In this document: positions 1,051 to 59,279 of the stretch, in pieces
Layout: every line of letters starts with the position of its first letter
How positions within the stretch are numbered: position 1 is the stretch's first letter
NCBI GenBank assembly: GCA_009103225.1
Contig: RHPI01003578.1
Span: 62,001-126,000, forward strand
Direction: 5' to 3'
Origin: Chlorokybus atmophyticus
Lineage: Eukaryota; Plantae; Mesostigma and Chlorokybus algae
DNA: 64,000 bases
The notes under the pieces: model-generated
Databases searched by the model: none
Seen by the model: the letters and a program-made list of their open reading frames with translations, nothing else
Told to the model about the DNA's origin: nothing
Translations under genes and position numbers: made by a program

Positions 1051-4000
1051 TTACCGTCCGCGTGTAGACAGTGTACTCCAGTACCCCCGAAAAATCTCCT
1101 GGCAGTTGGTAAGATTCTTTTCGGGCTCCCATGCATGGGAGCCCGAAACATATGTATTGTGCTCAACACCATACTCTTTCCATTTCATCAAGTAAGACGG
1201 CGCGCGTCCGCGTTGAGGCTTACGATGACTCAGGATTGCTTCCACCTCAGACTCAAAAGTATCGTCGCCATCCACTGCAACGGGGGGTGGAGGAGGTTAA
1301 ACCCGACCGTCAGAACGGTACGGTTTCAGTACACTCATATGAAACACATTGTGAGTGCGTATCGATTTTGGCAAGTTCAAACGATACGCGTGAGTGCCGA
1401 CCCGATCAATCACTTTAAACGGGCCTATCCAGCGAGGGAAAAACTTGCGGGTACCCACTCCCTTAATGGATATGTTTTTGGTGCTGAGCACCGAACAGCC
1501 CACATCGTAGTTGGCCTCTCTACGATGCGCATCAGCATGGGCTTTTTTTTCTGTCTTGCGCTGCGCGCAAACAGTCCTTTGCCAATGCTAACCTATCCTG
1601 CATGGCCGAAGCCATCTCGCGTGCTACAGGTACGCGAGTTATGTCGGTAGCTGGCAACGTAATATTTGCAGGACTCAATGGATGCACTCCATAATTCAAG
1701 AAAAACGGAGTTTCCTGCATACTCTCTTGCCATGCATTGTTAATTGCGAACTCAGCCATTGAGAGATAAACATCTCAATTTCATTGGTTCGGATTCTCAT
1801 AATGCCGGATGGTTTCCTCAATTATTTGATTGGCGCGCTCTGTCTGACCATCCATCTGCTGATGGTAAGCTGTGCTCATGTTCCGCTGAATATGTGAGAA
1901 GCTGCATAGCGACTTCCAGAACTGAGCTACAAATCGCGGATCGCGATCAGACACGAAGTTACGAGGCAAGCCGTGTAACTTAAACACAAAGGCGACAAAA
2001 ACCATGCTACTCACGGGAGCCTATTTCCGTGCGGCAAGGGACAATGTGAACCATTTTTGTTAAACGGTCCACACAAACTGCAACCGCAGTGTGCCCTAAT
2101 GCTGTATCTGGGAGCTCAGTAATTTGGTCCATACTCACACTTTTCCACTTGCCATCAGGAACAGGCAAAGGTCGCAGCAACCCAACGGGTTTCTGACGTA
2201 ACGGCTTGTCACGCTGACATTTGTCACACGTGTCAACATAATGCTTCACGTCAACAGGCAACGATGGCCACCAGTACAACTGTTGCGCTGCCTTGGTAGT
2301 CTTGCGACCCCCAAAGTGCCCAGCATACGGTGGATCGTGTACTTCAGCTATGCATTTTATGCGCAACCCAGCATGGTCAGGTTTCACCAAGCTGGCGCTC
2401 ATATAATACAAGTTGTCTCTTTTGCCAAGCTTTTGTACATTCTCTTGTTTAGAGAACCATGGGTATAATGCATACCCCTATAAAACAGCTTGCACAAAAT
2501 CATCATCAGGAGGCAATGTACCCTGTGTTGCAAGCAACTGCGCACGTATAAGTGCCAACAATGACGGATACCGACTCAGAGGATCTGCCACATTGGTTCT
2601 GCTCGGCCGGTATACCCATTCAAAGGTAAACCGCGACAAGAACTCATTCCAGCGAGCTTGCCTACGCGACAAGTTTAGCTGTGTTGAGAAGTACACCAAC
2701 GGGTTGTGATCAGTCACCACTATGAACTCAAATCCCTCCAAGTAACATCGCCATGTTTCAAGAGCATGCACAATACCAAGCAATTCCTGCTCAGTGGTAG
2801 TGTAGTTCACCTCTGCTGGGATGAATTTCCTACTCTCACAAGCACATGGTCGGCCATCCTGTAGCAATACACCTAAGGGTGGAGGCATTGCTAATCACAG
2901 TGAAGTGTTTATCCCAATTTGGCAATGCCAACACTGGTGCCGAAGTCAAAGCCAGCTTCACTTGTTGCATAGCAGCTTCTTGTGCTGCTGCCCAAGAGAA
3001 TGGGGTATCCTTTCGCAACAATTTTGTCAAAGGCACCACTACTGTGGAGTACCCCATCATAAACTTGCGAAAGTAGTTTGCCAATCCCAAGAATGATCGC
3101 AGCTGATGGATATTCTTAGGTCGAGGCCAATCCTTTACAACTTGCACTTTGCGGGGGTCAGGTTTCACACCCGCACCGCTCACAATGTGCCCCAAGAATG
3201 GCAACTCCGTCTTGCAGAAGTCACAATTCGCAAGATTGGCAAATAAGCGATGTGTACGCAGCAAGGCAAACACCGCTTCCAAGTGCTGCTTATGCTCTTT
3301 TTTGGTTTTACTGAAGACAATGATGTCATCCAAGTAAATTATAACATACTTGCCAAGTATGCCACCAAAAATCTTATTCATTTCCTTATGCAACACTGCG
3401 GGCGCATTAGTTAATCTAAAAGGTAACACTTTGTATTGATAATGGCCCGAAGGTGTTCTGAATGCTGTCTTGTAAACATCAGAAGGATGAATCCGGATTT
3501 GATGATACCCACTTGTCAAGTCCAACGTACTAAAGTACGCATTTCCCGACAATTTATCAAACACATCATCAATCCGGGGCAACGGGTATCAATTCTTTAC
3601 CGTGATCTTGTTCAAAGCACGGTAATCCACACACATGCCTAGCTTTCCATTCTTTTTCATCACAAACACAATGGGCGCGCAAAAGGGTGAAGAACTCGGT
3701 TTAATCAACCCCTTTTCCAATAACTCTTTGATTTGAGTTTCCATTTCCCCCCTCTCTCGGGGGCTCAGCCTATATATAGGCCGAAACGGAGGCTCACTAT
3801 CAGAAATGAGTGGTATTGTGTGTCCGACACCTCGGTCAGGAGGTAAGCCTGGCAACTCATCTGAGAACACATCTTGATATTATTTTCTGAATGATGTCTG
3901 CAACACCTTGTGGGTTTCCCGGCACAAAGTCGTCCAACGACGTCAAGTGTACCAGAAAAGCCGGTGCGTTTTTGCGCAACGCACGTTTCACTTGCAGTAC

Positions 4001-4830: not shown

Positions 4831-6265
4831 CTATTCAACCTTCTTGGCCTTGCCCTTCCCCTTAGTTGGGCAGTTCTTTGCGATGTGGCCAGGCTGATGA
4901 CAGACGTAACAGGTGCGAGCAGCAGCAGGCATGGCACCACCAGCAGGTGCGCCACTGGTAGAAGCACCAAATGTCTTCGCCTTCTGTGCTAAGTGTGCAC
5001 TCGGATGAGAAAAACGCTTTCCTCCCACCCCCGGCGGCTTGGCCGAAATTGCCACATGTGACTTGTCCCTGCACCGCTGTGTCATCATTGTACAGGTACA
5101 CGCTCAGGTTCTGCAGCTTGGCCAAGTCCTCTGCAACCCAAGGAAGTCCCGTTGCTGTATTGTACTGCAGCTGATCACGCACACGCGCATCCAAGCCGCG
5201 CTTGTACAACTCAAACGGCTCGGCCTTGTCCATGGGCATGAGGCCGCTGTTTGCACGACCCACCAATGCCTAAAACTTCTGCAGATAGGTTGAGGCCGCC
5301 CAACCATTCTGGCGCAACTTGCTGAGCTTGTTGCGAGCCTGATTAGCCGGGTCCATGCCACCATAGCGTTCCATCAGAAGCTGAAAAAGTGCCTCCACTG
5401 TCTTGGCAGCACCATCTTCTGTCTGCCTTGCCCATTCGGCGAGAGCATCAGATGGCATGAGCAACTCAGCAACAGTAATGTGCTCATTAACCGGGCGCTT
5501 GAGTGCCGTCAAGTAGTGCTCGACAGTGATCACCCAGTCGTGAATGCTGACGCTGACGTTAGGCTTGAACTTCTCAGGCTTGTTCAGCGCTGTCACTGGC
5601 AGACCTGCTGAAGTAGCACCCGCCACCAGTTGGCGCAGCGCCACCAACTTAGACTGCATAGCATCGAGGCGTGCCGTCAACTGCACTCGGCCAGTCAACT
5701 TGTCTTCCAAGTTAGGTCCCAAGTACCAGAACACATCCTTGCAACGCTGTGAGGTTTCCACTCCCAAGTTGGCCAAAGCCTCAAACGCCATTCGCTTGCC
5801 TTGGTAAGGGAGAGGCTTATCATATACGGTCATAATAGCAGCCACCTTTGGATCACCTCGCACGAGTGGCGGGATGTTGTTAGTTAGCTCATGTTTGAGC
5901 ATGCGGATCACCATCTCCTTGCTTGCACGAGGGAGTGTGGCAAAGTCTGTCTCATAGCCATCACGAACCGTCTGCGCCCATGCATCCCACGTTTCCTAAC
6001 GAAGCTGAGGGTGGGCAGCAAGTAGAGCTTTACGCTCTCAGGCATACTTCTCAATGGCCTTGCCAATGACACTCTGTGTGTCCACTGCAGCTGGTCCACT
6101 TTGAGAAGACAAGTCGGGAGAAGCTTCGCTTTCTTGCTTAGCTCCTTCCTTCTCACTGTCATTAAGCTTATAGCTTTCACTTGTGTCAGAGTAGTTCACC
6201 TCCTCTTCACTCGAAGGCTCATATGATGTGGACTTCTCCACATCATCCCCTCCTTGGTCAGACAT
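4831..6265 (-). pseudogene. gag: Gypsy gag with CCHC zinc knuckle, interrupted
   Basis: ORFs 6038-6376 and 5270-5914 are in the same frame separated by stops (ATG at 6265, MSDQGG...); KPEKFKP..W motif; CYVCHQPGHIAKNC knuckle in a shifted frame at 4831-5088. Confidence 0.85.
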
Positions 6266-11067: not shown

Positions 11068-14000
11068 GGGTAAACCGCCCTAACTTCGTAACCTAACCTA
11101 TCTTCGTATAACCTAGTTAACAGGCGCTGTAGGGCGCATCTGTGCTCTGATTGGCTTGAGCCTTATAGGGTTGGTATTAGGCATGTGTAGGGTTCGTTTG
11201 AACCAAAAACGTTGTAAAACGGACAAATATGGTGGTTTATTCTATTGTTTGAATATAGACAAAATAAACCACAATTACCGTGTACATAATGTCATAACTT
11301 TGTTTGATTATAACTTTTGCAAATGTTGGCTAAATAGGATGAATCTAAGCGCAAACGATTGCTTGTGTAGTGCTTAATCTAATTCCCAAAGGTATTACAT
11401 TTGGGGCGGTGATGCAAAAGTTGCATGGTTAAGGGTGGGGGGGGTAACGCGTAAGATTTTGGGTGAGATGTAAAAGTGCAAGAGTGAGCGTTTGGGCTTG
11501 AAATTTGGCTTGGCGCCTTGTTCTAACGTGCTAGACTGTTTGAAATGTGTTAGTATAGTTGGCAATGCTTAGAAACTATAGTGGTGTGGTCAAGGTTGGG
11601 GTGGTGAGGATGTGAGGTGTCCGCATGCATATGCCACATAGTGTGTATGCAAGTGAGCGCATGCAAGTGTGGGGTTGTGAGCAGGTTTGAGGCAGCAGTG
11701 TAACGCATTAGGCTTGCTTAAGGATACAAGTTATAGCTGTGCCTACCTCAACCTCTACACTACTCGAGGCTACCAATGCGAGGCAGCAAGAGTGCACGGG
11801 TGGGTGATGTATGCCTCTGCACAGCATCATCATCCCTGTGGCATCCCACTCAGACCACCCATGTCTCACATATCGCTGCTCTGGTGTGTGTAGGGCAGCA
11901 AGCGGGTGAGAGCAAAGACCCCACGCAGCAAGGGTCCTCGAGGCCTCCACATGAGACATCACGCCAACGGCAGACATATCACGGGTTGTGAGTGCAGTCA
12001 GAGAAGGGTGCATAACGGTGGGTGCTGCAACCCAGGAGCTGAACATCCCATACACAACTTTACGTGACTACTGCACGCATCCTGAGAAGCTTGAGAAGCC
12101 AAGGTTAGCACTCAGCACCTGCCATTGCATGTGTTAGCAACTGCAGTTGTCAGCACACATTAGCAATGTGGTAGCAATGCATGTACATGAAAAGGCAACT
12201 GTTCTGATGTGCTATGCAACTGCGTGCAGGGGGCCAGGTGCACCCACTCTTGTAACTGATGCAGAGGAGGATGACCTGGCTGCCTACGTGATTGCTAGGA
12301 ACCAAGTCGGACGTGCAATAACTTGGACAGAGCCATGCCTTGAGGTGGGCAAACGTTTATCAAAAGACCCAAGAAGACTGTTGCTGAAGGATGGTGTACC
12401 TTGCCGGAAGTGGAGTGATGCATTCCAAGCTAGAAGGCACCTGTCATCACGCAAAGCTGAAGCTCTGGACCGTTCACGGAGGGTTGGCTTGAGCAGACCC
12501 GTTGTGGAGCACTACTTCAATGTGCTGGAGGAGGTTGTCAAGGACTTGGGGATGGGGCCGGACAGAATTATCTCCGCGGACGAGATAGGAGTTGAGCCTG
12601 ACACTGCCATGCAAAATCAGCGAGTGATTGTGGCAAGGTACGTGTATCCCTGTGTGTGCAATATATGCTTAGCTCAAGTGTGCAATGAATGTGACATACG
12701 TGTGCACATGCAGTGGTTCTAAGTGGGCACAAGCTGCAACAACGGGTTCAAGGGAACATGTTACCTTGATAGCCGCAGTCACTGGCGTTGGCTATGCATT
12801 CCCACCGCTGGTGATAGTGAAAGGACAGAGGCTGAGCAAGGATATTGATGGCTTTGCAAAGGGTGTGCCGCTTGCCCGCTTCAAGGCACGAGAAAATGCT
12901 TGGATGACCACCGAGATCTTTGAGCTCTGGGTGCAGATGATGGTGGACCACATTCCAGGAGGAGTCTCTGTTACCAAGCCTGCACTGCTTGTCATTGATG
13001 GCCATGTCAGCCGTTACAACGCAGCCATGACCACCTTCGCCAGAGAGCATGGACTACACATCCTCATCCTTCCACCCCACACAACTCACAGACTGCAAGT
13101 GCTGGACGTGAGTTGTTTCCACCCCTTCAAGGAAGAGTACCGCAAGCAATATGCAGCAAGGCAAAGAACACGTTACAACTACCACCTGGGCCGAGAGAAA
13201 TTCCTTAGCATGCTCGTACAGCCATTTCATGCATCCATGGCACCTCAGACCATCATCAGCGGCTTTCGTGCATGCGGACTCTGGCCGTTGAACAAGCATT
13301 GTGTGGACAAGTACCTGCCACCTGTTCTGCCCCAAGGACACCTTGGGGCTTTGCTGGATGCCATCAATGCTGAAGTTGCTGAGGATCCCGCTACCGACCA
13401 GGAAGCCCCCAACCCAGAGGGAGATGACTGCGCACCTGGCACAGAAGCACCAGCCAAGAAGAGGAGAGGGGTGAAGGCTGCCCACCTCCTCACCAGTGAG
13501 CAGATGCATGAAATGCTAGAAGAGCAAGATGCAGAAAAGGGGCGGAAGAGGCAGGACAAGATCAGAAGGCAAAAGGAAAGAGCTGACAAGGCTGAGGCTG
13601 CTAAGCACGCAGCTGCTCGGAAGGCAGCCAAGAAGGCTGCCAGTGAAGCCAAGAGGTTCTTGGAGGAACAGGAAAAGGAGGAGAGGAGAGCAGCCAGGCA
13701 AGACAAGCAGCAAGAGGCAGCCCAGAAGAAGGAGGAAGCTGAGGAGATCGCGCACAAGGTGCAGGAGCCAAGGGAGCAGACGAAGGCAGAGGCGATGGCG
13801 ATCCTGTGCCGCTACGAGTGGAACAGTGTCTTGTGTGACAACCAGCAAGGACTCCCTTTCCTTGACAGGTCTGAGGACTACGCAGACACCCGACTCGCCC
13901 CTCACCCAGCAGCCAAGGAAGCCGGAGCTAGGTGGAGAGCTAAGAGGAGAGCTGCAGCGCAAGCCAAAAGTCAGTAATGGCCAGCCATAGTAGAATCTGC

Positions 14001-49420: not shown

Positions 49421-49694
49421 TCAGGCTCGCGCGGTGCTTACTGCCCATGCATTTGGGGGAAGGGCATTCCTGCGGACTGCTGCGGCGGCTGTTAAGCCGC
49501 TTAACAGCCGCCGCAGCAGTCCCAATGTAGTGAGGCAAAATGCAATGTCGTGGCCCATCTTCCCACAATACGAACACGCCAGGCCTTGCCTTTTTCGAGA
49601 GTACTTTGCTGTGTCCGGTCCCGTTTGCTGCTCCTCATGCCGAGCACCAATGGGAACGCCGTTTGCAACCATCACACTCCCTACCGGAACTAAC
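49421..49694 (-). pseudogene. CCHC zinc-knuckle (gag-like) ORF remnant interrupted by the Academ-like element
   Basis: CSYCGKMGHDIAFC = CX2CX4HX4C; frame stays open across the reconstructed empty site into 58276-58358. Confidence 0.55.
49474..49522. repeat. Perfect inverted repeat, 23-bp arms with 3-nt loop
   Basis: GGACTGCTGCGGCGGCTGTTAAG-CCG-CTTAACAGCCGCCGCAGCAGTCC. Confidence 0.95.
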
Positions 49695-50053
49695 TTGGCA
49701 GCCGGAAAGCCCGAGAGGGTCGCGCCAGGCGTTCATTGTCTCAAAATTTGTGATGCCGGTCAATGCGCCATGACGTTGCGGCTTGTTAACGGTTGATGGC
49801 TGTGTTAGTGCGTTGACGTGCGGAGCCGTCAATAAGTGTCGGCGGTGGTGATGTGTGTTAGGGTATGGTGACGACGATCGTGTCGATCTTGATGTGACAG
49901 AGTGATGTCGGTAGCGCAGCGGGAACGTCAGCGCAGCCATCAGGCTGTCAACTTTGAGCTCTGCTGGCATTGCTCCCGCGCAACGCAGAACGAGGGTTTT
50001 GTCGCCATGGCTGGTCTGAGTCACAGGGCGGCGGCGGTGAGTGGTGTGGGGCA

Positions 50054-50886
50054 ATGGCGGGCGATGGTGCTGGCGTGGTGGTTGAGGGGGGTGGTGTTGA
50101 TGGTGGTGAGCGTGATCACCGCCCGCAGAGCGCCGCGGTGAATGCTGTGAGTGATTTGGCGGCGTTGGTGGCCGCGGTTCATGGTCGTGGGGTGCAGCAG
50201 CGCCGTGGGTCTGCAGCGGGTGGGCCACAGGACGGTCCATTCATTGATTGTGCGCGGGCGGAGCGCAAACCTCCTAGTTACGCTGTCCAGCGCGACACCG
50301 ACTTCTGCTTCCGTGACATGCGCCAGGTTTGTGGTTTGTGTTGAGACTTTATGTGCATGTGTGTGTGCAAGCGTTCTGCAACGTATGACGTGTGACTAAT
50401 GCGTGTGTGTTTGCAGGTAACCCTGCGTGGGTTGATGATATGGCCGCGTGAGATGGAGGGTGGTGAATTGGAGACCTTGCACCTGGATTTCTGCAATGGT
50501 TTTGAGTTGGCGATCACTGCCCACTCGGAGGAGCCTGACCCTGAGCGGTGGGGTGCTGTTCTGCCCGACATTGTGTGTGTTGAACACTTGGTCCGTGGCG
50601 TGCCACTTGGCCGCGCCTGTTTTCAGATGGGTGATGATCCAGCCGCAGGTGAGCACAGCTGATTTGACTCGTGTTGCATGATTAGTTTAGGTGTTTATGC
50701 ATGTTGACAATGCTGGTCTCATGTGTGCTTGTGCGTGCAGGGCGGCGCCTCGCATGGCTTGACCTGGAGGGTGCTCCTAGTGGGTACTCACGCCCTGGCT
50801 CTATTATGTTCCCAGTCACGCCTCGGTTGGGGCGCGCCTGCCTGGCTCACGGTCGCCACGCGTTTGTGCATCTGCCTGATGCTTAG
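50054..50886 (+). CDS. Transposon passenger gene, 216 aa, AlkB-like 2OG-Fe(II) dioxygenase-like fold (tentative)
   Basis: Exons 50054-50326 (273 nt), 50417-50648 (232 nt), 50741-50886 (146 nt) join at GT-AG into one 651-nt frame; CNGFELAITAHSE (HxE), IVCVEHL, RPGSIMF..R..LAHG resemble the AlkB pattern VNxYxxgxgIxxHxD..SL..gSL.vM..aR..w.HgI; terminal RxS/TFR strand not evident. Confidence 0.55.
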
Positions 50887-51106
50887 ATTGTGTGTGTGTG
50901 TGGTTATGTTGTGGTGAGCAGTGTTTCCTGCAGAGTACTGTTGTACATATGTGCGAGCGTGTTGTTTGTGGCCTGTGTTATGTTCAACTGTGGCACGGTG
51001 CTGTGTGAATGTGCTCAACCCTTGACAGTGTAATACCTTTTTTGCATTGTGGCCTGATCGACACATGTGATGCATATTGAATTTCATAGTCGAGTAGTTT
51101 GATTGC

Positions 51107-54100
51107 CTACCAGTCTATGTCTCTATCCTCTAACTGTTGCAGCCATGCATGCACGTCGATGTTTGCATCCTCGTCCTCGTCCGAAGAGTAGGGGTCTACT
51201 TCAGGTGAGTCGCTTGGGTTCGGGGGCTCTTGCTCCTCTTCGTTTTCAGAGTCACTCTCATCACTGCTGGAGTCTTCCTGTATGTCTTGTGCATGCCCGG
51301 GGTCTGATGCATGGTTGTGTGTGGTGTTGCCCACGGTCTCCTGCATGCTTTGGCAGTCAAAGCAGCCGCAAGTGGGTCCGCAGACAGCACCATTTTTCTT
51401 GCATTTGCATTGCCTGGTAGTGCACTTGTTTTTCTTGCATTTGCACCCATGCATTACAAGTTCCGCCCTTGTCTTTGTGGCCTGCATGTTTTCATCTGTG
51501 TCTGGCTGAGCCTTGTACACTCCTTCAACCAGCACATATCCATACTGTGACAGTGGTGGCTGCTGCGACTGTGGCTGACACATCTGCAGCCACATGCTCG
51601 ACACCCAAATGCTCCTCTTGGCATGCAGCTCCAGGGCTGATGGGGATGGCATGTCATCTTTGTAGTCTGCGGTCTTGATCCAAATGCCTGTCTGGATCGT
51701 GTGCAACCACTTGCTTAATGCTGAGATGTCTGACTTGCTGGCTGCAGGGCCATTGGAGTCCATGAAGATGCTGGCCGCGCTGCTGTGCGAGGGGAAAACC
51801 ACTTTGTGTTTGGCATAGTATGCGCACCCTATCAGGCGCAACAGCAATGCAGTGGCGCCTGGCTCGTCCAAAGGTGTGTTTGCTGTTATGAATTCTGTCT
51901 CCTTGCACAGCACTTCAGTCCAGTAGTAGTGTTTGCTGATGCCCGCAAAGTAAGAGGTATAGTATGAGCCGGTGCCCGCGAAGAACAGCAATAAATATCG
52001 AGCTCTCTGATGAGGTTGAATGTGTCTCAGCTGTGGCAGCAGTCCCAGGTGTTTGAACAGTTTGCTCAAGTCAAGGAACGGTGGCCTTGATGAACTGTGT
52101 GATGTGGTCGCCAGCTGCACGTAAACTTGTCTACCAGGGTCCTGCCACTGCTCGAGAGCAGCCATGCCAATGATGGAGACATCAGTGTCTGGGGAGTAGA
52201 TGAGCACTGTGTGATAGCCACAGCGGAGTGCATGCAGCCACACTCTGCTATCAGCCTCTGCATGGTTGCATTGGTAATGTGCACTGATTGTGTAGCAAAT
52301 CCCTGCAGGTGTGTGGGCGACCACCCTTGCCTTGTCTTTGAGCAGTGGATGGTCAGAGCCTCCTGCAACGACGAAGCTCTAACCTGGGCGTAGGTATGGA
52401 GCTACCATCTCAGGTAGGTGATCTGTCATGAGGTTGCATAAGCTTCTCTTTAGGCTGCGGTCAGCGAGCAAGTCCCTCCATGATCTAGGTACCTCACTGT
52501 CAAGTGTTAAAGTGCGGCCTGTGCTAGTAATGCCACAGTCCCTGGCAACTTGTAGGGAGCTCTTGACTCCAGTGGCATGTGCAGGGTCATCGAAGACGAC
52601 GTGCAGAGACTGGACGCTGGGGTTGAAAAGTCTTGGTAGCAGTGAGGTGCGTACTGTCTGCAGTAAATAGTCTTGCATGGTGTCCACTCCAGTAGTAGGA
52701 CCTTTGTTGATGAGGAACATGCCTTCCGCGATAATTGACTCGATTCCTGGTGGATGTTTCAGGAGCTGGGAATCAGGGCATGTTGAGCTGAGGTCAGCCA
52801 GGAATTTGGCCTTGTCTCCCTTGCGCATACTGCCATCTTCTGTGAAGATGGCAAGCGGTATCGCCTGGTATGATGCCATGTCAGCATCCAATGGAGCGGA
52901 AGACTTGCCCAGTTGCTTCAAGATAAGTGTCTTGGTCTTGTGCAATCTTTGAATTGCACGCCCTTTCTTGATGGCCTGCTTTTTGATTTCCATGGTCTTG
53001 AGTCCGAACCGTCTTCCCACATTGCTTGCCTGCATCTCGTTACTATGCACAGCTTGAACATACAGCCTGAACTGATCAAGACCTATGCTGTAATGTTGGC
53101 TGAGGTCAGATGCAGCAGCTGTGCTGGCCTGACGCCCACTAAGGAGATGCACGAGGTGGTCTTCGTGCTGCTGGTCAAGGGTACCAGCGTTGAGCAGGAG
53201 CTGGAACATGCCGTTTACATTACACGATATCTTGTCACTGGGCATAACTAGAGGATCCTGCTGACATCTTGGGGTTGACTTGCGCTGTAGCAGACTGACC
53301 AGCTGCTTCAAACCCAGCGCCCTGTGAGATATGTGCCCTGTCTTGCGAATGAGGTAGTCTGGATTGGGCCTGTGCAGTGCAGACTTCAGGTCCTTGTTGA
53401 TCAGACACTCGTGCGCTTCGTCGAGACCCACACTGGAGGATCTCTTCCCACTGATGCTGATGGTGAACGCCCCTGCATCCAGCTTGCTCAAAATGTGATC
53501 CGGCATTTGTTGACAGTCAACCAAGTGCTGGCTCATCAGTTTCTGATAGTGCGGTCTGTCCCACGCAAATGCCAATGGTGACAAGTTCTTGTATGCTGCT
53601 AGGCGCAACTGCCACTGACTCGTTCTCAATGCAAAGTACAGGGCCAGATATGGAGCACAGTCGCGGGTGGTGAAGTTCCACCACATCCTCCATGTGGTGT
53701 CTCTCTCGCTCTTGGCTTCCCCGTAAGCAAAAAACTCTGCACAGTGCCTTGGATCGTTGATGTCCAGGTTTGCCACACAGTCCACAGAACACTCTTGCAT
53801 TGCTGCAGGGTTGTCTTCATGGAACCGAAGGAGCTGGTATCTATATATGGCTTCCCAGCATTGCACCAAATACGTGTGCATTCGCTTCCAATTGCTGCCT
53901 TCTGCTATCATGTTGCGAGCTGAACTTGCAGGAATGCTGCAAGCCACAGCCATGGCGTCCAGCACGGCATCCCAGTATATCTTGAACAACACAGGGATGA
54001 GGTTGTACAATGCATGCCAGTCCCCTGGCAGGGGAATCAACCAGTCCCAGTATCCTGGCTCAGTATGCTTGAAGGTCTGCATCATGCTGTACGTTTTCTG

Positions 54101-57100
54101 ATCCCCCGCCACACAAATCGTGTGTACCTGCTCGTCAACCCCAAGTTGCTCTTTCAGCTGCAGGAGTGCAATCTTGAGGTTGTCTGGCTTGTCTGGCTTG
54201 TCTGGGTTGAAAGGAAGCAGTGGCATGTAGAAGACGTTGCTCGGAGCAGTCTCTACGTGGTCAGGTCCCAGCAGGTACGCAAGTACACTCTTCAGTGTGT
54301 TCTGATCGAAGTCTTCTAACTGACTCCTTTTCAGCACTGTGTTATGCAGGTGGACCTGGAAGTTGGCAAAGCTCGCTGCCTCTATGTCTGACTTGTTGGT
54401 AATGATAGCACTGGGTGGGGGTGTGTTGAAGGTTCGTGGCCTTGGCGGCCGAACAGGCAACGTAGCAGGTTTGGGGAAAGGACGCCCGGCCTGTGAGAGG
54501 GTGCGGTAGCGCACTGCAGGCACCTCCTCCACTTGCATTGGTTGTGCATTCTGCCTTGGCTGAGGTATCACCACTTGTGTAGTTGTACAATGGAGGTCCT
54601 TGTCAGAACCCCCGTTATACCTGACCTGACCTGCACACTTGAAGTCCCAGTTGTCGATGGATGCAATGACGAACTCATCGCCCCCGGCTTTGACAGGGCA
54701 AGGCTGGCGTGATACAGCCACATTGCGAGACATGATACTTCTCTCAAGTGCTGCTCGTGCAATGCAGACTCCCAGGCGGTTCAAGATAGTCAGAAGTTTT
54801 GTGGAGCCACTCATGCCATCAACTGCCTCAGCCAACGCCACATGCAGTCTTGAGTACGAATGAGAATTCCTTGTGTAAATGACTCCACTCAGCAGGTAGA
54901 CAGCCCTCAGGTGCTTCAGACGCTCCCAAGGTTCCTCGCCCTCACGGCGGGGCGGACAACCAGTCAATGCCTTAAAGAAACTGATGAGGTCAGGGTGACA
55001 ACCACTCAGCTCTTTGCATTCATCAATAAACCTCACGTCTGCGCAGGACTCCTTGTTGATGTTTGCACGCTTTGCGGCCTCGGCCTTGACCAGCTCTCTG
55101 ATGTACATCAAGGTGCGCGCACTTAACTCCCCTTCTACCAGTCTGTGCTCATCTTCCTGGTGTTGCACGAGCCCTAAAAGGCAAGCTGCAGGGTCAACCC
55201 AGCTCCTCAACAGCAGTGTGCCACGGCGCCTCGAACCAGTCACCACAAACATGGCTGCTTGCAGCACCCTCCTCGAGGTACGCACCAGGTTGTTGGGCTG
55301 GCTGCGGTTCAACTTGTACAACTTGCCAACCTCATTCATCTTGACAGGGCAGGTCTGCTCCAAAAGCTGCTGCGCAATATAGCAAACTGGATCGCCAGGC
55401 AACTCCTGTTCAGTGCTATTCCCAGCAACATTTCTCAACAAGGTCAAGTGCTCCTCCTCTCTCACATTTTGTTGCTTCCACCATGGCATCCCAGCCTCTT
55501 CATGTGTCGTTTTGAGAGCTTGCAATGCGTCCTGAAGTCTTGCCACATCCAACTCCAACTGCAGCACATCCGCCTTACTGTTGGCTGCCTCTTGCTTAGC
55601 CTCCAGCACTCTGCTCTGGAGGTCGTGGACTGTTCCTCTAGCATCAGCCAATTCCTGCTGCCGCGTCTGCCAGTGACAACATCAGGTACTCGTACAGCAC
55701 CTCCAGAACTTGTGCACGGACACCAGGGCCACAATACAGTTCCAAGCACCAATTCACACACCTGGATCACTTCTTGCAGATGCATTGCCTCCTGTTGAAG
55801 GCAGATCAACTGGGCTTGACTGCTGGCACTTCGCTGGTCAGCATCCACCAACCTCGCAGCAAGGGCGCTACTCCATGTCTGCAACTCAGCATGCACCCCC
55901 TTCAACTCCTGTCAAGAAGGTTGGTGCCCATTGCAATTCTGCATCCAACACCATCTAACTAACACAGTCAGAGACTTCAGCAAACTCACACACACCATTC
56001 CTAGCACTACTCACCTGCAGCTGTGTGGTTGCAGAATCAGCCTCTGCTCGAAGATGTTGAACACTTGTGTTCAGATGCAACAAATCTCCTTCATGCAGCT
56101 CTTGATCGACCAGCTGCTGCCTGTTCAGAGACTCCAGCTGCGAGCGAATCTGCCTCTCGCTCGCCTCCACTTGCCCAATCTCGCACACCAAGTACTCAGA
56201 GTGCCGCTCCACCTGCTCCAAGTGCAGGCTCACATCACAGCACCCAGGAGCGTGCACGTGCTCTCCTTCACGGCTGACAACGGCACAGCCATCCAAGTGG
56301 TCACCCTGGGTACTTGATGATTCCTCACAAGCCCTAACTCGAGACAGTTCTTCTCCAACAGCCTCAAGTTGCATGAGGAGGCCACCCCTCCCTGCATCCA
56401 ACTCGCCCACTAGTCCTTTGAGCTGTATATTAGACTGCTCCGCTACAGCTAATGCTCTTGTAACATCCTCCAGCTCATCCAGCATTCCACATCTCTCAGA
56501 CTCCCATGCAGCCAACACATCCTGCAGCAAGCACACAACCTGATGACGACCAACCCAATAGACAGTTTTACACATGCAAGCTGATATAACATGATAGTCG
56601 TATGCAACTCAAAGCCATGTAATGAGCTGTATATCGTGTGCTTTAGACTTTTGTACACTAGCGCTTCAGAGGTTGAGATACACAATTTATAGTTCACTTA
56701 CATGCAGTCTTAACATCACAATACACTGCAGGTGTTGTCGGGCACACATGTGGTATGTTCACGGTTGCATATGCACTATCTACTCATCTTTTGTACACAC
56801 TCATGAGAGTACTTGCAATGCGCCAGCCAGGATGTGTAGTGTACAGAACGGACCTGCACAGAAGACAAGTTGTCCGCACGCGCGTTCATGTTGAACAACG
56901 GCACTTGCCCACAGCTCATAGTTGCTTGTTGCATACCTAATACAATCAGAGTTTCAGCAAATGTATGTTCCGCACACTAGCCATAGTAAGCAGGTCGCAC
57001 ATAAGGGCCTCTCGGACCTCCGGCAAATTGCTGACTACGACTCGCAGTCTGTGGCCCGGTGTGCTGTGAGCCCATCGTTGCATCATTGTCACAACTCTGC

Positions 57101-57944
57101 GACTGATGCTGGTGCTGAGACTGGTGCAGCACATTTGCATCAGTGAAAGGGCGAGGTGCTGATCGCGGCTGCTGACCACCCTGAGGTGCATTCCTCAGGG
57201 TACAGTTGCCTTGACTAGCAGCTGGGTCAACGTTCTCCTGGTTCTCACCGCCGCCACTCTGCATCACAAGACACCTCACACTTAGATATGCACATCACAG
57301 GCCAGCCATATCACGGTGCGCAGCACTAATGGCAAAAACACTTGGGACTCACCACATAAGCACTGCCAAGAGGTGAGCTGATGTATGGCACAGACGACCT
57401 GGCCGCATTAGCTTCTTGCGAGCCAGCAGAGCCAGGCAGACGCCACTCAGGATGCACACCCTGCAAACCAAGACCCTTCAGAACCTTGAGTATGCGCAAG
57501 TGAGTGAAACAACTTACATGCAACCACAGCTAACATTACTGCATAACTTACATGCAACATCACCAGAGTGCGGCGATCAGACTGCAACTTCCAGCACCGC
57601 CCCGAACAGGCAACTTGGATGAGCACCTCACTGTCTGGCATACCATCAGACAGGTTGAGGTCGGCACGCAGTGTCTCGATCACATCCTTCCTCTTGGCTC
57701 TGTACTTCCGGGCCGATGCAGCCTGCTGGAGCCTACGCCGCTTCTTAGCAGCCTCATCAGCAGGTGAACTCGCAGTGCGCTCCTCAGCAACCTCGCGCCC
57801 ACGTTCACGGCCAGCGTCGGCCTGAGATGCGTCCTCACAGCGCTCCCCAGCATCCCCGCTAACCTCATCGTTAGCAGGAGACCCAAACAAGCCACCACCC
57901 CTATCGTCCCCACCCTCACCACGATGACCACCATGACTACCCAT
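51107..57944 (-). CDS. Academ-like transposase (basic-helix N-terminus, coiled coil, DDE-like core, XPG/FEN1-like nuclease, Cys8 finger), one premature stop
   Basis: ORFs 52379-55651 (1090 aa) and 51107-52324 (405 aa) are in the same frame, separated by one TAG (52379-52381); motifs IDNWD, GDQKT, PGDWH, LDEAHE, IAEGMF, HVVFDD, NHAEADSRVWLHA, SPDTDV, CKCKKNKCTTRQCKCKKNGAVCGPTCGCFDC; upstream coiled-coil exons splice in frame; link to exons at 57944-57000 is inferred. Confidence 0.85.
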
Positions 57945-58456
57945 CTCGCGCCCCTGCGGCCACCGCCAACCCAGTACTCGCTATTACCGGCCCCCCCGAA
58001 CAATGAGCTCCACACCCTGCCAATGACATCAACACGTTTGAATTTGCAAAATGAGCGCGCTCCGGTTGATACCGTTGCAGCGACCATAACGTCGACTTGG
58101 AGCAACCAGTATCAATCTCCAGTGTCCACACAGACGCCGTTAAACGTCGACATCAGCCGACTCTTGTCGACCAAATCTACTCTTGGGAACGTCAACAGAC
58201 GGCGAACGGTGTTAATCGCAGTCGCCTGCAGTCAACGTTTTTGAGACAATGAAACCCCCTCGGGCTTTCCGGCTGTTGGTGACTGTAGCTTGACCTCCAT
58301 CGCGCCGACTAAAATCGCCTAGCATCGGTGTGCTTGGTAGTTCTCGACAGCTGCGTCGTCATGCTCTCTATTCCCAACGAACTACCGGTGCGGCTGATTG
58401 GGCGTGTGATTGGGCCGGCCGGCATAAGGGCACAAAACACATCACACGCGCACGAC

Positions 58457-59279
58457 GGCCATCAGTGACATACGGCACCCGCGACTGCTGGGCTGCGCGG
58501 TATGCGCCGCCCGCCTGCCTCTCATTGGCTAGGCAGCAATAATAAGTTATCGGCCGTTCGATCTGTCAAATTAAATCTCGACCGTCCAAAGCTCATCCCA
58601 TTTTCATGCAACTGCTCAAAATATATGCCAGTGATATATACTTTATTTATGATGATCTTAATAACTATATGCAATTATGACATAAAAATTATGCACTGTA
58701 CTTTATGATAATCAAAAATATGTACATGCATCATAAGTGCAAGTTATGTATGATATATACGCACTTATATACGAGTAATCTTGTATCATACATATATTAC
58801 ATTATATATGAATGCAAGATTTTACATATATATTATATAATAATACATAGTACCATACACATTATATGCATATCATAACATAATATTATTATAGAATTAA
58901 ATATATATATTATTTGTGATATACAATAAACATATGAGACATGGAATCTTTTATGCATCATGTATAAATACTATATATATTATTATATGCATATAATATA
59001 TATTGCAAAAAATGAGGACAACATGGTGCACATTTGGCGGCATATAGTTTCACATGGCTTATATGATCTGAACATGTCCCATAATATATTAAGTACTAAC
59101 GTTTCTGCCACGTTACGTGCGGAGATACGTGGTGCGGCTTTGGTCGGGCCATCACACGGCCCGCGACTGCCGGGCTACGCGGCAGTATGTGCGGCCCGGC
59201 TTCTCATTGGCTAGGCGGCGAGTACAGGCATTACACCGTTAGATCTGCCTAAACGATCGTGGCCATCCAAAGCTCATCC
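58457..59279. repeat. Two diverged direct repeats (~58457-58598 and ~59147-59279) flanking an AT-rich spacer
   Basis: Shared GGCCATCA..CCCGCGACTGC.GGGCT.CGCGG..CTCATTGGCTAGGC.GC..GATCTG..TCCAAAGCTCATCC; spacer 58610-59100 is strongly AT-rich. Confidence 0.75.

Follow-up and report, generated by a model that had tools for sequence, protein, structure and literature searches.

A 64,000-nt stretch of the genome of the streptophyte alga Chlorokybus atmophyticus (contig RHPI01003578.1 of assembly GCA_009103225.1, positions 62,001 to 126,000 of the forward strand; hereafter, the window) contains a complete DNA transposon with exact borders at 49699-58275, a span of 8.6 kb bounded by terminal inverted repeats (TIRs). 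Besides a minus-strand transposase gene, the element holds a second gene on the plus strand at 50054-50886, which we refer to as the cargo. Judged by its sequence, the cargo appears to be a real, intact, three-exon spliced gene inside the transposon. We put at about one in two the probability that it is a lineage-restricted orphan accessory gene maintained with the element. The transposon itself is AcademX-like, a label that we regard as reasonable but not proven. A first-pass annotation of this DNA had read the cargo as an AlkB-like dioxygenase that could be a transposon-borne, base-modifying module, a claim that was supported by none of the tests that we ran.

The TIRs were found in a repeat search of the window as two pairs of blocks, an outer pair of 22 nt with one mismatch (49699-49720 with 58254-58275) and a perfect inner pair of 15 nt (49732-49746 with 58239-58253). 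In an end-to-end alignment, the blocks proved collinear, except that 11 inserted nt separate them at the left end; the left TIR thus occupies 49699-49746 (plus strand) and the right TIR 58239-58275 (minus strand). Direct reading of the sequence identified a TTGG target site duplication (TSD) that flanks the element, with identical copies at 49695-49698 and 58276-58279. The exact borders were fixed independently because a paralogous site without the insertion is available. Two Logan contigs from two runs (X1 record 1, 1579 nt, and X2 record 9, 554 nt) followed the left flank as far as 49696, with ~13% mismatches, and then passed directly into AATGACTGTAGCTTGCCCTCCATCGCGCCG, the sequence found beyond 58279 on the right. 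These contigs represent a paralogous empty site that is ~87% identical to the flanks and has TTAA where the window has TTGG. Since a paralogous copy of the flank exists without the element, the target of the insertion was an older repeat, of which four bases were duplicated. The matched TIRs and the TTGG duplication that had been noted from the sequence alone were therefore confirmed.

The flanks of the element (49619-49698 and 58280-58310) form a repeat family, with insertion-free copies of ~87% identity in the Logan contigs of both runs. The contig copies of this repeat have a higher word depth (8.5 to 8.9 versus ~3.5). A perfect 49-nt palindrome with 24-nt arms and a 1-nt spacer lies inside the target repeat at 49474-49522, ~180 bp to the left of the element.

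The three exons of the cargo are located at 50054-50326 (91 codons), 50417-50648 (77 codons and 1 nt), and 50741-50886 (including the TAG stop), and the two introns of 90 and 92 nt have GT-AG ends. Joined, the exons give 651 nt in frame, or 216 codons and a stop. The gene is convergent to the transposase gene, and 220 bp separate the two stops. The first-pass annotation had described this arrangement of a minus-strand transposase and a convergent, three-exon gene for 216 aa, with stops ~220 bp apart, and the gene model held; the peptides that had been quoted from the cargo are present. GC makes up 58 to 67% of the exons, as compared with 46% of the introns and 44% of the 3' flank, and none of the six frames has a better codon score than the annotated one. 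Between the left TIR and exon 1, the left subterminal region (49747-50053, plus strand) carries GACGTT and TGACGT motifs and presumably includes the cargo promoter and 5' untranslated region. A candidate polyadenylation signal, the TGTAA pentamer that many green algae typically use, is found within 51020-51035, in the 220-bp intergenic gap and ~145 nt past the stop of the cargo.

We looked for relatives of the cargo protein among 1.84 billion representative proteins and 5.8 billion clusters and found only one. A phmmer search of the representatives with exon 2 returned a single true match (E 2e-31, 72% identity) to P0001 (Chrsp1S03102), a 171-aa annotated protein of C. atmophyticus. Two further matches to exon 2 at E ~1e-7, P0002 and P0003, were giant TPR and cadherin-like repeat proteins and were rejected as spurious, repeat-driven scores. 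A word-indexed search with P0001 recovered no protein other than the query, a metagenome scan with it gave no relatives, and exact look-ups of P0001 and of the exon 2 open reading frame (ORF) in public assemblies gave no record. Protein-atlas searches with exon 2 and with P0001 returned only subthreshold clusters of bacterial hypothetical proteins, including DUF6334.

The spliced 216-aa protein aligned with P0001 over 166 residues with no gaps and 58% identity (E 2e-71), and the two C termini end within 4 residues of each other. Because the gapless alignment crosses both exon junctions, it provides independent support for the splice model. Conservation is uneven, with 71% identity in exon 2 (55 of 77 residues), the best-conserved part, versus 43 to 51% elsewhere (24 of 47 in exon 3 and 18 of 42 in the tail of exon 1). 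Among the residues shared by the two proteins are C66, H113, C117, H127, H148, C202, H205, and H208, as well as three tryptophans, and the core of the cargo protein is acidic (pI 5.0 to 5.6). The last ~27 residues encoded by exon 1 are conserved, and the N-terminal ~50 are Gly/Ala rich. These first ~50 residues are of low complexity and unmatched in P0001, which leaves the start codon uncertain. The two proteins differ at 42% of the aligned residues without an indel, frameshift, or stop, which makes a long period of neutral decay unlikely, and most of the divergence from P0001 probably took place under purifying selection.

The pattern of conservation also bears on whether the cargo is a functional gene at all. 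An ORF could have stayed open by chance through the A-poor plus strand, or a pseudogene could be in decay, with P0001 an overpredicted model in a sister copy. A makes up only 13% of the coding strand, and therefore stop codons are rare and several ORFs overlap. This explanation would also account for the lack of conservation in the low-complexity N-terminal 50 residues, for a low protein-atlas recognition score, and for the fact that the contigs covering the splice junctions are unspliced and genomic. It does not account for a gapless alignment of 166 residues that runs over two introns at identical positions, for the clear contrast in composition between exons and introns in a gene whose annotated frame is the best of six, or for the concentration of identity in exon 2, which is what a folded core would produce. 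We consider it unlikely that the cargo is nonfunctional.

A captured host gene is a possibility that we take more seriously, while still thinking it doubtful. In this explanation, the cargo is a passenger that was picked up as DNA with its introns, P0001 is either the parental host gene or a paralogue, and the gene has no role for the element. The retained introns, whose positions match those in P0001, the separate orientation of the cargo with presumably its own promoter, and a family of only two members in very large databases are all as expected for a passenger. A recent capture is difficult to reconcile with 58% identity to the sole candidate parent, yet the ORF is intact. Captured genes are usually partial or chimeric, whereas the cargo covers P0001 over its full length, conserved core and shared stop included, and no closer host parent was found in a search that is blind to unannotated genes. 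On balance, we favor an accessory gene over a passively captured host gene.

The first-pass annotation had proposed that the cargo encodes an AlkB-like 2-oxoglutarate (2OG)- and Fe(II)-dependent dioxygenase with a double-stranded beta-helix fold. Such an enzyme, whether AlkB-like or another 2OG-Fe(II) dioxygenase, would oxidize modified bases and could serve the transposon as an antisilencing module. A set of 24,736 Pfam models that includes all 2OG-FeII_Oxy families, Tet_JBP, and the cupins yielded no family for the three cargo exons (E up to 1) or for P0001 (E up to 10). NCBIfam gave no match, and a profile built from the two homologues and compared with all PDB sequences gave only chance matches (E ~1). 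For an AlkB reference, we went from Escherichia coli alkB (b2212) to 80 AlkB loci and from these to a 19-sequence alignment. When the cargo profile was compared with this alignment by hhalign, the probability was 0.08 on a percent scale (E 0.63 over 16 columns). An AlkB hidden Markov model run with all filters off reported ~60% of 4,000 shuffled sequences and neither of the two real ones. In Smith-Waterman permutation tests against E. coli AlkB, the 216-aa protein had a z score of 0.9. P0001 alone showed a weak local similarity (z 3.3, reached by 8 of 1000 shuffles), and its best alignment with AlkB leaves the iron ligands H131, D133, and H187 unpaired.

The HxE...H pattern that had suggested a dioxygenase is present in the cargo protein as H127-S-E129 followed by H205 and H208; it is conserved in P0001, and its spacing is within the range of 2OG oxygenases. 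Five of six histidines are kept, against a background identity of 58%, and the conserved histidines carry no weight because only two sequences at this level of identity are being compared. The 216-aa protein has no 2OG-binding Arg or Lys after the distal His, ending in AFVHLPDA 8 residues past H208, and P0001 has a single Lys in this region that is not conserved. Both proteins end 8 to 11 residues after the last conserved His, which leaves no room for strand VIII in either of them. It had been suggested that truncation or a different splicing pattern might hide the 2OG-binding strand. Since P0001 has the same C terminus, no fourth exon is missing, and the absence of this strand is not a splicing artifact.

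In AlphaFold2, the mean pLDDT was 31.1 when the sequence was modeled alone and 35.8 when an alignment of four rows was supplied. These low-confidence models had an all-beta tendency with 8 to 9 strands, a point in favor of a dioxygenase, and a Foldseek search of the PDB with the poor AlphaFold2 model returned nothing below E 0.3. The cargo protein is not a recognizable 2OG-Fe(II)/AlkB dioxygenase; the identification is not supported, and one defining feature is absent. We consider a dioxygenase the least probable of all the explanations discussed here. Only slightly better are the prospects of a minimal, highly divergent metal-binding beta sandwich or jelly roll, built on H113, C117, H127, H148, C202, H205, and H208, that an Academ element would carry to alter DNA or chromatin marks or to blunt silencing, and we regard this as very improbable.

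The transposase gene occupies most of the element on the minus strand. Its 5' exons (55652-57944), as predicted from ORFs and sequence, start with an ATG at 57944 and would encode a bZIP-like basic helix and coiled-coil segments, with several GT-AG introns. A bZIP identity for the N terminus was considered and set aside, as there was no Pfam bZIP match. The large exon that follows is an ORF of 1090 codons (52382-55651) with a DUF6589-type domain at ~53840-54178 (Pfam E 8.7e-8; 31.7 bits versus a curated cut-off of 27). This ORF ends at an in-frame TAG (52379-52381), and the next 423 codons, to 51110, share its frame. With both ORFs in one frame, a single premature stop splits a reading frame of ~1,500 codons. 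This copy of the element is probably nonautonomous because of the premature TAG. The codons around the TAG are otherwise intact, so that, barring readthrough of the stop, inactivation of this copy appears to be recent.

The part of the transposase downstream of the premature stop (51107-52378, 423 codons and a stop codon at 51107-51109) has a PIN/XPG-like motif, a CXC cluster, and an acidic tail. The first of these, an EAD...DTD motif at ~52166-52264, was read by eye. The CXC (Tesmin/LIN54-like) cluster at ~51347-51451 has nine cysteines in HGCKCKKNKCTTRQCKCKKNGAVCGPTCGCFDC; it matched Pfam TCR at E 2.6e-4, just under the curated cut-off, and the LIN54 CXC domain in the PDB (5fd3) at E 0.016. 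In a protein-atlas feature search, the nearest matches of the distal transposase were clusters of eukaryotic hypothetical and CXC proteins at 0.88 to 0.91 (CXC at 0.88), followed at 0.74 to 0.78 by clusters for XPG_I, Pox_G5, 5_3_exonuc_N (5'-3' exonuclease), and XRN_N. The structural neighbors of the top match at 0.91 include models of 5'-3' exonuclease, XRN, and XPG_I at TM scores of 0.36 to 0.49. Neither Pfam nor PDB sequence searches found XPG or FEN1 in the distal transposase. The motif and the feature matches are suggestive of a PIN/XPG-like nuclease in the transposase. No transposase relatives were found in two word-indexed protein searches (with the whole protein and with residues 470 to 1085) or in a metagenome scan with the core, and an exact look-up of the 1090-aa ORF in public assemblies gave no record.

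The subterminal regions contain short motifs that may be binding sites for the transposase. Five of the 25 copies of GACGTT/AACGTC in the window fall in two 212-nt subterminal regions (49747-49958 and 58016-58227), an ~30-fold enrichment that was observed post hoc. TGACGT occurs at 49771, 49814, 49925, and 58189.

The Academ superfamily and its AcademX lineage were reportedly described by Kapitonov and Jurka in 2010 and by Kojima in 2020, as cited in PMC10045372 and PMC5751038. AcademX elements are described as having TSDs of 3 to 4 bp and a nuclease and AcademH elements TSDs of 9 to 10 bp and a helicase (PMC10045372). As of 2017, no Pfam family existed for the RNase H-like domain of Academ, which was most abundant in rust fungi (PMC5751038), and DUF6589 is reported to be enriched in rust fungi. 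We infer from the abundance of both in rust fungi that DUF6589 may correspond to the Academ transposase. The element in the window resembles AcademX in its TIRs, with blocks of 22 and 15 nt, together with a TSD of 4 bp, and in one very long protein that would combine a transposase, with DUF6589 above its cut-off, a putative nuclease-like region, and a C-terminal cysteine-rich domain of the Cys8 type, in the form of the CXC cluster. It differs from AcademX in having an extra, convergent, spliced gene that is unrelated to the transposase, in its streptophyte algal host, and in an XPG homology that is visible only by motif and weak feature matches. The Academ-like classification proposed in the first-pass annotation is supported by the TIRs, the TSD, and the CXC cluster; the DUF6589 domain would add to it if it is the Academ transposase domain, and the XPG signal is faint.

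Taken together, these observations fit the following reading. A copy of an AcademX-like cut-and-paste transposon entered an older repeat and duplicated its TTGG target. Its transposase, in which a catalytic domain of the DUF6589 type would be joined to a PIN/XPG-like nuclease and a CXC cluster, is probably disabled in this copy by the one in-frame TAG. The second, convergent three-exon gene, which we infer to be expressed, would be transcribed independently from its place between the 3' end of the transposase gene and the left TIR. Its product would be a small acidic protein with a core of ~150 residues, probably all beta, with eight conserved Cys and His residues. Selection would have kept the cargo intact while it traveled with the element, and, by analogy with the second ORFs of other TIR transposons, the protein may assist transposition as a cofactor or modulate control by the host.

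Several points weigh against an accessory gene of an Academ element as the explanation for the cargo. The only public runs that contain the locus give contigs of ~200 nt that are 100% identical to it. These read unspliced through both ends of intron 2, the donor after exon 2 and the acceptor before exon 3, so they are genomic and not transcripts. The argument for selection is drawn from one protein pair. P0001 is known here as a protein sequence alone, and the cargo gene has been seen in one copy of the element; self-BLAST found no second copy within the 64-kb window. The AlphaFold2 models, with mean pLDDT values of 31 to 36, do not give a fold. The case for Academ membership depends on the length of the TSD, a DUF domain, and faint nuclease and CXC signals.

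The surroundings of the element are rich in transposons. Further mobile-element remnants lie in the window at 2836-3582, 5270-5914, and 12685-13977; they include reverse transcriptase with RNase H (RVT_1, E 1.5e-26), a retrotransposon gag, and an ORF of 430 aa for a DDE_1 (pogo/Tc1-like) transposase (E 1.3e-20). Just to the right of the element, the segment at 58700-59000 is AT rich with several short inverted repeats, and the GC content falls to ~46% from 58 kb onward.

The resemblance of the cargo protein to E. coli AlkB is superficial, consisting of an H-x-E ... H-G pattern and, in P0001, a short IVSV..G.P..A.FQ.G similarity. It differs from AlkB in the absence of significant sequence or profile similarity, in iron ligands that do not align, and in having no 2OG-binding RxxxxxR strand. 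A parallel for an element with a traveling gene is provided by the Kyakuja-Dileera-Zisupton (KDZ) transposons, which are said by Iyer et al. (2014, cited in PMC5751038) to be associated with TET/JBP dioxygenase genes in basidiomycetes. Like these, the element in the window is a large cut-and-paste transposon with cysteine clusters and a second gene. It differs from them in TSD length and in a cargo with no signal for TET/JBP or any other 2OG dioxygenase, and its transposase has no Pfam KDZ match.

Pack-MULE, CACTA, and Helitron elements capture host genes, and the captures are typically recent, fragmentary, and decaying. The cargo resembles them as an intron-bearing gene inside a DNA transposon with a homologue elsewhere in the lineage. 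It differs in its apparently complete and intact state and in sharing no more than 58% identity with that homologue. If the cargo is merely a captured host gene, it represents ordinary transduplication.

Accessory genes are well known from other TIR transposons, among them the Myb-like ORF2 of PIF/Harbinger, TNPA of En/Spm, mudrB of MuDR, and VANC of VANDAL21, an orphan antisilencing protein in Arabidopsis. We know of no earlier case in an Academ element, and a literature search that did not extend to the main Academ papers found no description of a second gene in these elements. A second gene of orphan character in an element of the Academ type may represent a new variant. If the cargo is constant and selected in its transposon family, it would be the first known Academ accessory gene and would encode a transposon protein specific to its lineage, in a streptophyte alga that was among the earliest to diverge, and it would be a candidate for a function in transposon-host conflict comparable to that of VANC. 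The cargo differs from the established accessory genes in being known from sequence alone and in encoding an acidic protein, and its acidity argues against a simple DNA-binding cofactor. It is like them in being a small extra gene that lies inside the TIRs beside the transposase and is restricted to one lineage, and like VANC, it has no recognizable domain.

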